Positions 287 through 44,215 of a DNA stretch of 64,000 nucleotides are shown here, piece after piece. The notes under the pieces were generated by a model. That model searched no databases, was not told the DNA's origin, and saw nothing but the letters and a program-made list of their open reading frames with translations. Position 1 is the stretch's first letter, and each line of letters begins with the position of its first letter. This DNA comes from Pelomyxa schiedti (Eukaryota > Protista > Evosea): positions 153,031 through 217,030 of the forward strand of contig JAHLWZ010000792.1 of NCBI GenBank assembly GCA_020536535.1. Direction: 5' to 3'. Both the position numbers and the translations under genes were made by a program.

Positions 287-2200
287 ATGGAGCGGGTGCC
301 GTTGGACGTTGTTGGGAGGCTGTGCGTGGAACTGGCCGCAGCCGACGACGGCGTGAGCAGCTGGCGCATGCTCGTGGCGTGGCCCTGCCTGTGGCGGGCC
401 ACGCGAGGGGCGCCGGGGAGCAGCGGGGGGGGGGCGCCTGCGGCCTCCGCAGTCCCGCCCCCTGGCCTACAGGCTCCAGGAGGAGGAGGAGGAGGAGGGG
501 GGGCTGGGCCAGGGACCGCGAGGCCAGGCGCAGCCGAAGCGGACGCGGCGGTGTGGCTGCCGTTGTTTCTGGCCACTGGGGGCGATCTCTCGTGGTTCCC
601 TCGGGGTGCGATGTTTGTTTGTCTGTATGGAGGCGGCGGGGGGTGGGGGCGGTATTGCTACTTTGGATCCACGTTAACGAGGTGGGTTTTTATTTAAGGC
701 ACAGAGGAGAGCGGAGTCACGTGGAGGGAGAGGTTCCTTGAAAACATGAGGGGGCCACTGAGGAAAGCCAGGGAAGCCGCTAGGTCCATACTAGCGCGGC
801 ACCAGTGGTTTATGTCAACAAATTATGGGAACCCTGGCACCATTGGGGATAACGAAGTGGCTTCTTTGGCGCAACTAATGGATCTCCCACCAGTTCCGGA
901 ATTGGACCAACTGCACGCTCTGACAAAGGGCGCAATTTTTCTGCTAAAGAAAGAGCCGAACTTGATTACTCTGCAGTTCCCGGTGTGGTGATTCAGAAAT
1001 CTATTTAACTAATTGGTCCACTTTGGTTGATAGTGAGGTTCTCTAACTTCGAAAAGATTGTGATTGTGGGGGATATCCACGGGCAGCTGGAAGACTTGCA
1101 CCACGTTTTTAAGCTCTTGGGCTCTCCTCAGCAGCGTTCTTTCCTTTTCTTGGGTGACTATGTTGATAAAGGGTACTCTCTCGATTTCAAATAATTGTGT
1201 TGTACTCAATCTCCCATAAACAGGTATCATTCCCTTCAGTGTATTAGTCTTATATTTGCATTGAAAATCCTTTTCCCTTCTTCAGTTACTTTGCTCAGGT
1301 AGTTGGTATGGAACAGTACTCAAGTAACAAAATGAAATCACAGAGGAAACCACGAAACCCGGCAAATGACACAGGTCCATGGTTTATGTGATGAGTGTAA
1401 AACCGCTTACGAAGATATGACGTCCTGGGAATCGTCCTGGGAATGGCTGTGTGATGCATTTGAATGTCTTCCTTTAGTATGTACACCAGATCAAGCTTGC
1501 GATTCAACTTGAAGAGCTAGGCCGCCACTGTAGGTAACAAAGTATTTGCTGTCCACGGAGGCCCAAGCCCAGGTTAGCACTCCCATCACTTGAACGTCAA
1601 TAAACTCCAGCCAGAGTTGACTGAGATAAGTGATATCCTAAAACTTGATAGATTCGTTGACATAACCACTGACGAAGGCATTGTAACTGTCCCTGTTTGT
1701 TTTCAAATTACCTGAAAATTACTTCAGATTACAGACTTGCTCTGGTCGGACCCTGACAGTGAAGCTGAAGACTGGAGCCTATCCCCTCGAGGAGCTGGGC
1801 GTATGTGCATGTCTAATTTCTCAGTTTTGCAGTTATTCTAATACGTTTTTTTTTTTTTGCAGACCTTTTCGGGCACTGTGCAAGTGAATCGTTTCTTAAT
1901 AGAAACAATCTGCAGTTCATTATAAGAAGCCACCAGCTTGTCATGGAAGGAATACACTGGGAATTTGACAACCGTGTGTGCACAATATACAGCTGCAGCA
2001 ATTACGCGTATCGCTGTGGCAACTCAGGTGCTGCTGTTGTGATTGAGGAATGCACAGGGCGCCACAGTGGAACGACTACTGTGGGTACAATGCGGAATGA
2101 GAAGATTCTAGCCGGCGGCACCATCCTTGTGAGGGAAATCGCGTGGCCGACCCTGCCACTGTATCCATATCCAAGCCAGATGCACAAATACTTCATTTAG
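287..2200 (+). CDS. PP2A/PP4/PP6-like PPP Ser/Thr phosphatase with N-terminal F-box-like extension (multi-exon)
   Basis: Hand-spliced exons give [46 protein letters not shown] and [11 protein letters not shown]. The C-terminus KYFI* resembles the PP2A-family YFL tail. The first intron boundaries (about 606-698) are inferred. Confidence 0.85.
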
Positions 2201-2389
2201 TTCCTATCAATCAAAAGTTATTTTTCACAACTTGCTTCTATGTTTGTTTTTGTTTTTCTCACACACACATCCACTTGCCGTGTCAGGGAGTCTGGTCCAA
2301 CCAATGTCAAGTGAGTACACAAAACGACTCAACAACATTGGAATAAGGCCGATTCCTGGAAAAGAACAAACAGTTGAAACGTTGCGGAG

Positions 2390-5358
<2,969 letters not shown>

Positions 5359-39943: not shown

Positions 39944-42900
39944 TTACAAGTCACGGCGAGAAACGAGGCAAGAATGGTGGTGGGATTTTACCACAACAGG
40001 CGTTTCGGAGTCTGTGAGTTGATATTTAGAATGAAACAGAACAAGGGGAAACATACCCAGAGCGAATCCATGCAGTTCCAAGTCGTCCATAAGGTTATCA
40101 ATGAGCTTCTGGGTTACACTCGGCATCACGTACACGTGGTTGAAGTTGCGGTTGTATTTCTGGTCACCCTCAGTCTCCTCCAGAGTCTCCCCACTAAGGC
40201 TGTACTTGAAGATAGTATCCTTGTGCGGTGCTCGGAAGCAAACAGCAAGTGCATTGGGATGGTGGATGATCCACAGGTCTCCCGGTTGTTCTGGGAGAGG
40301 AGGGTTGAGGGAGCGATTCTTTTGTTTTGGGTGTTAGCTTATTTAGTACTGATGGTTTTGGACCAACCCTCAGTTCTAATGCTTGAAGTCTCCTCGTAAA
40401 GTAATCAGCAAGATCCACACACGCTACTGCACGATCCGCAAGTTCTTCATGGGATGTAGAAGCAAGAGAATTCCAAACAAGCAAGGGGGTGAGCGCCGTT
40501 CTGGAGCCAGCGAATGTTGTATCTGGTGAACCGATATACTGGGGATCACCTGTGTTTGTTAGGAAGGGCAAAGGAAATTCGGAAGAAATACTTGGTGGGG
40601 TGATTTGGTATTTCGTCTGCAAGTTAAAGGTGTGTGAGATAAATTACACTGGGTGATGAGAAAGTTGTACCCTAGTCATAAAAAGACCGCCGGGTACGGC
40701 ACAGCCAAGGAATTTGTGGGACGAGTTGGAAATGGAATGGACCATCGGGAGAGTGAAGTCAAACTGCGGAAGTTTTCTTCCCCTCTACGGTGAAGGTAAG
40801 CCTTCAATCTTTTCGAAAAGATTTGTGCTTACCTGGCGGAGGAAAGGTACATAAGACCCTCCCAGGGCAGCATCAATATGGATCCAATAGCCATCCCTTA
40901 TCTCTGGACGGGTTGTTTCCCTCTTTACACCCCTTGGCCACATCTCTCGAGTTTCCATTCCGGTTTCAACGAGGATTTTTTTAATTTCGGGTACTGGAAG
41001 GAGTTAGGGGAAAAGACAAAGTCGCAAGACGGTATACATATTTCTTCCACTGGGTCATATCCCGACTTGAAAGTAGTCCCAATGTTGAGGATTATGAGGG
41101 GAGGATATTTCTTCTCGCAGAAGAACCTCACCAACTTGAATAAGAGGTCAGTTTGAATTGTACCCGGTCCTCTGCTCCCACCTGTCTTGAATTAAAATGA
41201 AAGGGATGAAAAAAAAATAGAAACCTGCAGCAGGAATGGTATCATTGTTAGGCCAGTTTCCATCAGCCGTTATTGGGCACCTCCAGGCATCACGGAATTT
41301 CTTCTTTGAGTGCATTAGCTTCCCCAGTTCCATGCAGGAGAAAATGCTCATCGTACGCAAACATTTCACAATTGAGTAATGAGTATCTTCACTGGAAAAA
41401 GGAGGTAAGGAACGGTAACAATGGCAGAAAATAAACCTGAAAAAAGCCACTGGGGTGAAAAACGGATCATGTGGTGCTCGAGGCTTTTTTGGTTTATGCG
41501 GCGTATCTGGTGGAGCAGCAGTTATCGCGAAAGGTAGACTTGGTCGGGGAGCGTGTTTAGGAACACTCTTCTTGGGAAGGACTCGTTGAGCATTTATCAA
41601 CGACACTCCAGAAAGGTAGTCACGGGCGTTGTATAGGCCATACATATTAGCCTCTGTTTCGTACGTCCATCAGAATCAATGTTAAACTGGGAAAAAGATT
41701 GAACCTGTTGAGCCCATTGTCAACATGTATCCCCAATAGGATTCAGGATTGGGTATAGTGTCCTCTGGGTTCCTTAGTTGGATCCCCCAAAGCCTGGCAA
41801 AATAGTTTAAGACATTTATCTCCAAGTGCTTTGTGTTCAACTTTTGGTAGTCCAAAAATTAGTACTTGAAAATTTGAAAATTAAGTCTACCGTGAGGTAG
41901 CCATTCTTGAAAGGGTCTCCAACGTTATTTGCTGGTATGCTAAAGCAGTCAATCATTTCGTCAGTTAGAGGCGCAATTGCTCTATTGATTTGATAGCCAA
42001 CGAAGTTGCCAAATTGTTGGCGAAGAAACATATCATTCAACTTGGTTTTTGTTAGTAAGGGAGAGTTATTTGCCACTCACCTTGAGCTTATGCATTCTAT
42101 CAATCTGACTAAGGCCGGTATCAGGGATAACAAAATTTTTCCAAGATGGTTGGTCCATAAGGGTTGGGTATGTTGTGTTCTTTCCCTGTTGCACTTGTGG
42201 CTCTGAAGGTGGGGGTACAGGTGGACTAGGCCCCTTCCTAGATTCCAATTGCACAAGACTCCCTAGCATTACAAAGAACTTGTCCATGGAGGAAAACAGA
42301 CAAAATTCATTTGCAGTGTGATAGACACTCTGGTCTGCAAATCCAACCATCTGTAACTTCACAGCGAGCTTATCCACCATGTCAGTGACAATTGGCACAG
42401 TCCCGAGCAGGGCAATCGAAGGTGCCGTACAACCTGCATCCCGGAGGGCATCCCGCACTACACGGTAGAAATCATCTTCTGGGCAGATGATTCCTTTGGC
42501 CATCGACTCACCGCATACGAAGTCAATAACAGGGAACTGCAAAGTGGTTTAATGACTCTCATTAGAGGAACCAGACTTACTTCGTCAATTTTTACTGGCG
42601 AAACATCCGTTGATGCACCTCGAAGCTTGTGAATGCTCTGCCATATCTCGGGATTTGCCTTGAGTACCTTGAAGTAGTCTTCGAGCTGTGTTTTCACTTT
42701 CGTCACCTGGGTTCTTATTACTTGTGTAGAAGAGAAGTATATTTAAGTAGATCAACAAACATCATATTTAGGAAGGACACGAATATCTCCTTGTAGAGTG
42801 AAAGTTGACGGAATCTGATTGCGAGCCAAATCTTTCTCTGTAGGGTCTCGCGGGGAAGTAGCTTTAAACGAACTCTCACAAGGATACTTGTGGTTTGTTT

Positions 42901-44038
42901 CCCAGTCGTGGTCACGTGGGCAAATATCTATGTTTAGTTAGAGCGAAAAACCACATGGTTCGAGTAGTACTAGTGTAAAAATGCGCCTGAAGTGCTATCA
43001 AAATATCATTTGCAACTTCAGTTGGATTCACTATCTCCATTGGGAATCCACTGTGCTTAGTAACCTTCGCCCCCTTTACAGTAATCTCCCAGCTTAAAAC
43101 ACCAGCATCCCCTTCAAAAATGTTAGTTATGGAACCAGCAACGAGGGTGTAAGTCATAGTACCACATGTTACAGTGTTCCCACAGGTGTCCACCCATAGA
43201 ACATCAGCCCCACGTAGAAATTCCAGTTTGCCATTATCCATCAACCAATCCGCACCTATTGGAGAAAGAAACACATATACATATTAAAACTAAATAAAAA
43301 ATTAAACTTATTTAAAAAACGTAAGCATACCACAATGAGCCTCCTCCTGTTCCTCGTCGCTAATAAATATAACAACTAGCTTGCACTTCAGCTCAACGCG
43401 ATGCAATGCCAGGTACTTCAGGAAGTAAGCCTGAACGGCGAGGTGGCCGAGGCAGTCAGTCGTACCCCTTCCGTACAAATAGTCCTGATCAGGAGGTGCA
43501 GCCTCTGACAACTTAAATGGGTTGTGTTCACAAACGGGATTGTCCCATTGGGCTGGATCAGCTGGCACCTGTTACCACGAAATCAATGAAACAATCACAA
43601 TCACAACAGAATAACAAAACGAAACGCGAAGTTAACTTACAACGTCCATGTGAGAGCCCATGATGCACAATACTGGAGCTGGGGGAGTGCATCCAGGATG
43701 AGAGTCGTATGTAAGAACTACGTTTGGTCTGTCCTTCAACTTAGGATTATCACTGCAGAGCTGCGAAAAGGAAAAAGTTATTCACGGTGTTGGTGGTGAT
43801 AACTCACTCGCTCGATTGTCAAGAAGGACCCTGGTTTCAGAACCGGAGCCAAATACTTGAGTAGCACCTGGTAGATGAGCTCCTCCTTGGGTGGCTCTTG
43901 GCCCGGCTTCAGGACTGAGGGGAGAATTGGAATGAAGTTTCAAAGAGAGAAACAAGATGCCTGACCCGTGTAGTTCTGAAGCCATAAGGTCTGGGCAATC
44001 AACTCTCGCAGAAGGCCGACGTATTCTAGTCGCTCCAT
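39944..44038 (-). CDS. Fusion of M20 acetylornithine-deacetylase-like amidohydrolase and group II PLP-dependent (histidine/serine-decarboxylase-like) decarboxylase
   Basis: M20 motifs GSHMDVVPA, GRGTTDCLGH, ISDEE, KHSG and YHTANE. Decarboxylase motifs FVGYQIN, NNVGDPF, YWGYMLTMGST, EDTHYS, NIGTTFK, WIHIDAA, SSHK (PLP lysine) and GSR. There is no stop between the two domains. Confidence 0.85.
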
Positions 44039-44215
44039 GAACCGTCAGAAAACCGACTTTTTGTTGTTTCGTCTGTTTGTGCCCTTTAAAAGAGTGTGGT
44101 CGGTTGGGAAAATTATTTTATAAAAAAATTACACTAAACGGTAAGAAGAGGGAATCCAGGCATTTGCGTTTTCGTAACGCACATCACAAATTGAAGGTGA
44201 AGAACGTGCATAGAA

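Follow-up and report, generated by a model that had tools for sequence, protein, structure and literature searches.

A predicted M20 amidohydrolase fused to a methionine decarboxylase-family enzyme in Pelomyxa schiedti

A 64,000-nucleotide stretch of the Pelomyxa schiedti genome (GenBank assembly GCA_020536535.1, contig JAHLWZ010000792.1, positions 153,031 to 217,030 of the forward strand; hereafter the window, to which our coordinates refer) contains on its minus strand an open frame in which the end of an M20-family protein passes directly into the beginning of a pyridoxal phosphate (PLP)-dependent decarboxylase. This raises the question of whether the two enzymes are indeed encoded by one gene and, if so, whether they act one after the other. 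The M20-decarboxylase fusion is a new arrangement of two known kinds of enzyme, found only in P. schiedti. The best overall explanation, to which we give somewhat less than an even chance, is a two-enzyme fusion protein in which M20 deacylation would feed a decarboxylation by an enzyme of the L-methionine decarboxylase (MetDC) family.

The fusion gene and its junction

Window 31944-52038, in which the gene lies, matches positions 184974-205068 of contig JAHLWZ010000792.1 exactly when compared as the reverse complement. According to our hand-built splice model, the gene consists of 20 exons and 19 introns; its spliced frame of 3147 nt leads from the ATG at 44038 to the stop codon at 39946-39944 and encodes 1048 residues. 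The product is identical, residue for residue, to the GenBank protein KAH3758067.1 (P0316 in our set), deposited under the name "histidine decarboxylase" (1048 aa). The sequence-only reading knew of no description of the fusion, and none was found in the searched literature; however, as the 1048-residue model was already in GenBank, it is only the architecture and its meaning that are undescribed, and not the open reading frame. The introns are 40-75 nt long, all of them (19 of 19) of the GT-AG type, and many bear a CTAAC-like branch motif near the acceptor. The P. schiedti genome has been reported to hold 7.4 introns per gene, with gene models refined by means of transcriptome data; the fusion protein is not mentioned in that paper (PMC8887013).

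As the sequence-only reading had noticed, the C-terminus of the M20 half, a linker and the N-terminus of the decarboxylase lie in one open reading frame: the frame 42066..42542 (minus strand) carries ...YHTANEFCLFSSMDKFFVMLGSLVQLE, then SRKGPSPPVPPPSEPQVQQGKN and then TTYPTLMDQPSWKNFVIPDTGLSQIDRMHKLK. The part of it that remains after splicing is exon 9 (42536-42081), which contains no stop codon and comprises the M20 end ...VYHTANEFCLFSSMDKFFVMLGSLVQLE, the proline-rich linker and the decarboxylase start TTYPTLMDQPSWKNFVIPDTGLSQIDRMHKLK. It is followed by the 40-nt phase-0 intron already recognised in that reading (42080-42041), the donor of which is GTGAGTGG and the tail ...CTTACTAACAAAAACCAAG, while the downstream exon begins with LNDMFLRQQFGNFVGYQIN. 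When KAH3758067.1 was searched against Pfam, Peptidase_M20, M20_dimer and Pyridoxal_deC were each found above the cut-off.

Two further paralogues are present in P. schiedti on other contigs, P0317 (KAH3760384.1, 1018 aa, locus L004) and P0001 (KAH3758482.1, 1034 aa, locus L001). Their identity to the window copy is 59% and 30%, respectively, in the M20 half (residues 1-452), 44% and 32% in the linker (453-475), and 76% and 66% in the decarboxylase half (476-1048). In both loci the M20 end, the linker and the decarboxylase start are located within a single uninterrupted exon, and the next intron follows the same HKLK codon in the same phase. The linker, 23 residues long and proline-rich in the window copy, differs among the paralogues in sequence and length by in-frame insertions and deletions only. 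Since the frame across the boundary has been kept open in paralogues with M20 halves just 30-59% identical, its openness is not due to chance. We are highly confident that this is a real single gene; the three paralogues go back to a single fusion event followed by duplications.

The 3' half of the gene is covered by an intron-free, cDNA-like contig of 1403 nt (L002; ENA ERZ12420482 NODE_221), which aligns to positions 1771-3175 of the predicted mRNA with 99.7% identity, confirms exactly the positions of nine introns (the first at 41704-41654, the last at 40056-40012) and reveals a 3' untranslated region (UTR) of at least 28 nt. Relative to the genome it shows a single substitution (PKHAP to PKQAP) and a 3-nt deletion that shortens HHH to HH in a histidine run (39944-39970, 41560 region), which suggests an allele or a different isolate. 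Two of the introns are in frame and free of stop codons (43112-43162 and 40550-40591), and their retention would add 17 or 14 residues, respectively, leaving the protein unbroken.

As to the paralogues, two of the three GenBank models (P0001 and P0317) omit an exon. The model of P0001 lacks the exon L001:8939-9058, which encodes the conserved ...LIILNIGTTFKSGYDP segment, and that of P0317 lacks a GKLM...TIPA segment, which is present in the cDNA-derived protein P0245. Just downstream of P0001 (L001:10792-11750, contig JAHLWZ010000763.1) there is a further copy of the fusion gene, incomplete and degenerate, for which a 220-aa protein is annotated; its fragments match residues 146-182, 225-326, 382-419 and 997-1027 of P0001, the last one with 97% identity.

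Affiliation of the two halves

The C-terminal half matches PF00282 (Pyridoxal_deC) with 40.9 bits against a gathering score of 27, and its 573 residues align over their whole length with the L-methionine decarboxylase of Streptomyces sp. 590 (EC 4.1.1.57; structures 7CIF and 7CIG). The match to 7CIF (E 1.2e-94, 321 bits; residues 14-544 of the query to 29-547 of the chain) includes both long inserts, which the Pelomyxa half has in common with MetDC and which set these proteins apart, as a separate family, from the histidine decarboxylases of about 380 residues. The matches to a plant serine decarboxylase structure (E 4.5e-27) and to histidine decarboxylase (7ERV, E 3e-22) follow, and the score with the histidine decarboxylase equivalog NF002748 was 192.4 bits, short of its cut-off of 305. 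All positions invariant in about 190 relatives are kept, namely G522, Q524, N545, N546, D549, E603, N605, H679, Y680, S681, K769, H817, D819, S853, H855, K856, D888, S894 and R895; the columns of the PLP-binding lysine K856 (S-x-H-K), D819 (H-[VI]-D-[AG]-A), H679 (T-H-Y-S) and R895 (G-S-R) do not vary in any of 192 relatives. This half is thus firmly predicted to be a group II PLP decarboxylase of the L-methionine decarboxylase family, and its deposition as a histidine decarboxylase is probably an error. The likeness to long bacterial enzymes resembling histidine decarboxylase (HDC), proposed in the sequence-only reading, holds as far as the bacterial relatives are concerned (35-41% identity), but the HDC equivalog failed and MetDC proved to be the closest characterised enzyme.

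The likeness to MetDC extends to the glutamine of the GYQ motif (Q524, aligned with Gln64), to Y883 (aligned with Tyr421, in a column invariant or almost so among about 190 relatives), to the S-x-H-K lysine and to the other PLP residues. In MetDC, Gln64 is reportedly the specificity determinant and Tyr421 the acid catalyst. The GYQ glutamine, however, is shared by 189 of 190 relatives and is thus a mark of the family that need not indicate the substrate. The Pelomyxa half differs from MetDC in being fused behind an M20 enzyme and in having isoleucine, not alanine, after this glutamine, and it departs from the family at several nearly fixed positions, where G/A is replaced by S770/G771, W by F857 and G by S854.

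The relatives of the decarboxylase half, about 500-720 residues long, are mostly bacterial (Nostoc, Vibrio, Clostridium tetani, Sorangium and many metagenomic sequences), the eukaryotic ones being a few proteins of bdelloid rotifers and one of Physarum; they are variously annotated as histidine, glutamate or "pyridoxal-dependent" decarboxylases. These long "histidine decarboxylase-like" proteins, 35-41% identical to the Pelomyxa half and with the invariant residues in common, stand alone, without an M20 domain, and Pfam lists only PF00282 for them. Three proteins from Logan/ENA assemblies (P0248, P0269 and P0281) form a well-supported clade within this family, distinguished by about 130 extra C-terminal and 50-80 extra N-terminal residues for which no Pfam domain is listed.

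The N-terminal half matches PF01546 at residues 94-449 (60.8 bits, cut-off 24.6) and PF07687 at 214-328 (35.9 bits, cut-off 21), and is, as far as can be judged from its sequence, a two-domain M20 di-metal amidohydrolase, similar to ArgE, DapE and acetylornithine deacetylase, with a complete predicted active site. The nearest relative of this half is P0002, a fragment from a marine eukaryotic metatranscriptome (30% identity); alignment to P0002, and via P0002 to Neisseria DapE, provides the catalytic set H97, D99, D138, E172, E173, D202, H230 and H428. The residues that the sequence-only reading had considered intact, the M20 metal ligands and the PLP lysine, are indeed present. With the ArgE/DapE-type deacylases, including the eukaryotic acetylornithine-deacetylase-like ones, the Pelomyxa half has in common the catalytic and dimerisation domains and the motifs H-x-D, GRGTTD, S-D-E-E and the C-terminal YH..NE; the sequences nearest to it, fragments from eukaryotic metatranscriptomes, bear these motifs too. 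It differs from these deacylases in bearing a decarboxylase at its C-terminus and in scoring below the curated equivalog cut-offs. The best NCBIfam matches are of the ArgE/DapE type, all below cut-off (the best with 93 bits against 333); the ArgE equivalogs TIGR01892 and NF003474 gave 50.3 bits against 297.7 and 38 against 460, and a distant relative is annotated as acetylornithine deacetylase. An AlphaFold2 model of residues 1-455, built from a five-sequence alignment, was compared with known structures by Foldseek, and among the matches listed all were of the M20 family (DapE, ArgE, carnosinases, Dug1p, CPG2 and others; E about 1e-14, TM 0.45-0.65), which is consistent with the predicted fold. 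The earlier description of this half as ArgE-type stands in the wider sense of an ArgE/DapE-like M20 amidohydrolase, but no ArgE or DapE equivalog cut-off was reached, and the substrate is not readable from homology. The coordinates of the gene and of its main features are collected in Table 1.

Table 1. Features of the fusion gene in the window (P0316, window copy; P0317 and P0001, paralogues; P0002, nearest relative of the M20 half)
Feature	Position	Strand	Basis or remark
Whole coding region	39944..44038	-	Hand-built model identical to KAH3758067.1; 1048 codons and stop
M20 half, residues 1-452 (exons 1-8, beginning of exon 9)	42246..44038	-	Pfam, Foldseek
Linker, residues 453-475, SRKGPSPPVPPPSEPQVQQGKN...	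42177..42245	-	Paralogue alignments
Decarboxylase half, residues 476-1048 (remainder of exon 9, exons 10-20)	39944..42176	-	7CIF match, PF00282, family-invariant residues
Junction exon (exon 9), residues 356-507	42081..42536	-	No stop; also in both paralogue loci
Intron after K507 (HKLK), 40 nt, phase 0	42041..42080	-	GTGAGT donor, TACTAAC branch-point-like motif
Intron, 51 nt, in frame, stop-free, GTACTA...TAACTAAC...AG	43112..43162	-	Removal from homologues (P0002 alignment) and GenBank model only
Intron, 42 nt, in frame, stop-free	40550..40591	-	Removal confirmed by cDNA
Stretch covered by cDNA-like contig L002	39916..41741	-	Alignment to predicted mRNA
H97 (GSHMD), predicted first M20 metal ligand	43650..43652	-	Alignment
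D138 (GRGTTDC), predicted bridging metal ligand	43455..43457	-	Alignment
E172 and E173 (SDEE), predicted general-base Glu and metal-ligand Glu	43350..43355	-	Alignment
D202 (WVDT), probable fourth metal ligand	43188..43190	-	Inferred assignment; conserved in P0316, P0317, P0001 and P0002; inexact alignment with DapE Glu
H230 (KHSG), conserved dimerisation-domain His	43053..43055	-	Aligns with DapE GKQGH via P0002
H428 (VYHTANE), predicted last M20 metal ligand	42318..42320	-	Alignment
Q524 and I525 in GYQI motif	41987..41992	-	Q524 corresponds to MetDC Gln64, I525 to the plant serine/alanine decarboxylase specificity residue
K856 (SNSSHK; S-x-H-K), predicted PLP-binding lysine	40713..40715	-	Invariant in 192 of 192 family members

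Possible coupling of the two reactions

Both halves are quite likely to be catalytically competent, judging by the residues that they retain. An N-acyl amino acid or a short peptide would be cleaved by the M20 half to yield a neutral L-amino acid, which the decarboxylase half would convert to a primary amine; in the case of methionine, which is a reasonable first guess for the substrate, if a rather doubtful one, the product would be 3-methylthiopropylamine. Enzymes of both parent families work as homodimers, and the fusion protein is therefore probably a dimer or a larger assembly. We would propose tentatively, giving it less than an even chance, that the two reactions are consecutive steps. 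The arguments for this two-step reading are as follows: the fusion has survived two duplications, two of the three copies keep every residue of the M20 catalytic set, and the M20 enzymes ArgE of Escherichia coli and aminoacylase-1 accept N-acetyl- and N-formyl-methionine.

Other natural two-enzyme fusions with a decarboxylase among their parts have been described. Two catalytic domains are united in one chain in the Plasmodium AdoMetDC/ODC (PMC3940083) and in the bacterial DsyGD, where they perform consecutive steps of one pathway (PMC11306096). The domains and the chemistry of both are unrelated to those of the Pelomyxa protein, so that the analogy is one of possible working and not of family relationship. 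Should the fusion be a "Rosetta stone", it would point to an unrecognised route by which an acetylated, formylated or peptide-bound neutral amino acid, such as methionine, is deacylated and immediately decarboxylated by one protein to an amine such as 3-methylthiopropylamine; we regard this as rather unlikely.

The serious rival to the two-step reading is a real fusion with halves that are not consecutive in action, the M20 domain being mainly an oligomerisation, stabilising or regulatory module or having an unrelated activity; the protein would then amount to a decarboxylase of the MetDC family to which a further domain has been added. We assign to this explanation a substantial chance, smaller than an even one. 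It agrees with the faster evolution of the M20 half (30-59% identity among the paralogues, against 66-76% in the decarboxylase half) and with a precedent from another archamoeba, Entamoeba histolytica, in which an acetylornithine deacetylase, an M20 protein of a different subtype, has a catalysis-independent, "moonlighting" role (PMC5093748). Of most relevance here is P0001, in which the M20 domain is retained at full length and yet matches no Pfam M20 model and lacks five of the seven catalytic residues listed in Table 1 (H97, D138, E173, H230 and H428), E172 being replaced by Asp; in at least one copy, therefore, the domain can serve a non-catalytic purpose. On the other hand, P0317 keeps H97, D138, E172, E173, D202, H230 and H428, and the conservation of all eight catalytic and metal-binding residues in two of the three paralogues, at just 59% identity of their M20 halves, indicates selection for M20 catalysis.

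Several other observations, like the state of P0001, weigh against the two-step reading. The decarboxylase genes of three bacteria (Nostoc, Clostridium tetani and Vibrio vulnificus) stand alone, with no M20 gene as a neighbour, so that a shared pathway finds no backing in the order of the genes, an observation that speaks for the rival; the genes flanking the fusion in the window, for an SPX-CitMHS transporter and a VPS9 protein, are likewise uninformative on the pathway. The M20 half is remote from every characterised enzyme (the best sequence match in PDB has an E-value of 1e-7, and no NCBIfam cut-off was reached), and its structural model is of only moderate quality (pLDDT 63, pTM 0.58). 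As for the decarboxylase, the third residue of the motif Y-P-[Y/F] sets the specificity of plant serine and alanine decarboxylases (PMC11407765), and in the family discussed here the residue after the GYQ glutamine varies (A in 65 relatives, V in 57, T in 29, and others); since it is Ile in Pelomyxa and Ala in MetDC, the substrate may differ from that of MetDC. The main gap is that no accessible transcript crosses the junction between the halves, L002 beginning at 41741. The coupling of the two reactions is a plausible proposal only.

A more specific pathway was suggested in the sequence-only reading, namely that the M20 half deacetylates N-acetylornithine and the decarboxylase converts ornithine to putrescine, with the supply of ethanolamine or beta-alanine as variants. 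The ArgE/DapE type of the best NCBIfam models and the distant relative named acetylornithine deacetylase agree with it, as does the rise in putrescine upon overexpression of acetylornithine deacetylase in E. histolytica (PMC5093748). However, the decarboxylase half is closest to MetDC, with an E-value about 67 orders of magnitude below that for serine decarboxylase, and the M20 half reached 38-50 bits with the ArgE equivalogs, the cut-offs of which are 298-460. To our knowledge, moreover, the ornithine decarboxylases described so far fall into other fold groups. We regard this pathway, including its variants, as quite improbable. The weakest explanation, that the gene model merges two neighbours, an M20 gene with its end at the 42066 stop (inside an intron left unspliced) and a decarboxylase gene with its start at Met482, may draw on the lack of a junction-spanning transcript, on the conservation of Met482 in all three paralogues and on the exon errors in two of the three GenBank models, but is extremely improbable, since no stop, frameshift or intergenic space separates the halves in any of the paralogues in spite of their divergence, the position and phase of the 40-nt intron are conserved, and the motif YPxL...F.IP..GL, common to the stand-alone bacterial enzymes, begins upstream of Met482, so that a separate decarboxylase starting there would be truncated at its N-terminus.

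Returning to the two-enzyme fusion, its interest lies in the union of halves from two well-known families, kept through two duplications in P. schiedti, and evidence that the two activities are coupled would increase it. If the halves act in sequence, a substrate link is predicted between two poorly understood groups, the eukaryotic acetylornithine-deacetylase-like M20 proteins and the long "histidine decarboxylase-like" proteins, which are widespread and of which L-methionine decarboxylase is the only characterised member found; for both groups, including the large bacterial one, this would be a functional lead. With methionine as the amino acid, the fusion would also offer a first approach, at the level of a gene, to the decarboxylation of methionine in eukaryotes. 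For a dinoflagellate, the genes of the methionine-decarboxylation route to DMSP have been reported as unknown (PMC11306096), so a eukaryotic gene of the MetDC type is of some wider interest, Pelomyxa itself not being tied to DMSP. P0001, with its predicted dead M20 domain, offers a natural control for the importance of M20 catalysis.

Distribution, origin and genomic surroundings

A search of 5.8 billion proteins with a whole fusion and, separately, with the decarboxylase half as queries retrieved, besides the Pelomyxa copies, only single-domain PF00282 proteins, and a search of 1.84 billion cluster representatives with the junction exon retrieved only P0001 and four weak M20 fragments. No relatives were found by pattern scans of prokaryotic genomes, bacterial and archaeal (M20 half), and of JGI metagenomes (junction). 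A literature search pairing the names of both Pfam families returned no paper. Apart from the Pelomyxa copies, no match exceeded about 41% identity. KAH3758067.1 itself belongs, without being the representative, to a cluster that has a 442-aa cDNA fragment at its head; it was missed by the homology searches and by that of the cluster representatives, and was found by cluster look-up. Since it was concealed in this way, as other fusions might in principle be, the searches for the fusion are not exhaustive.

In the phylogenetic tree the three Pelomyxa copies form one clade with support 100 and a very long stem, while Physarum and the rotifers are placed elsewhere, among bacterial sequences. Such a mainly bacterial family with scattered eukaryotes is compatible with lateral transfers; because of the length of the stem we name no donor lineage for Pelomyxa, nor a direction.

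No Rfam family was found at gathering score anywhere in the 64-kb window. The SPX-CitMHS transporter gene lies upstream of the fusion gene on the same strand, and its stop codon is separated from the ATG of the fusion by 177 nt (44039-44215), into which the promoter and the 5' UTR of the fusion gene must fit. At some distance, at 2390-5355 on the plus strand, the window contains an elongation factor 2 (EF-2) gene, one exon of which is 100% identical to P. schiedti EF-2; a second EF-2 of P. schiedti (P0126), encoded on another contig, is only about 80% identical.

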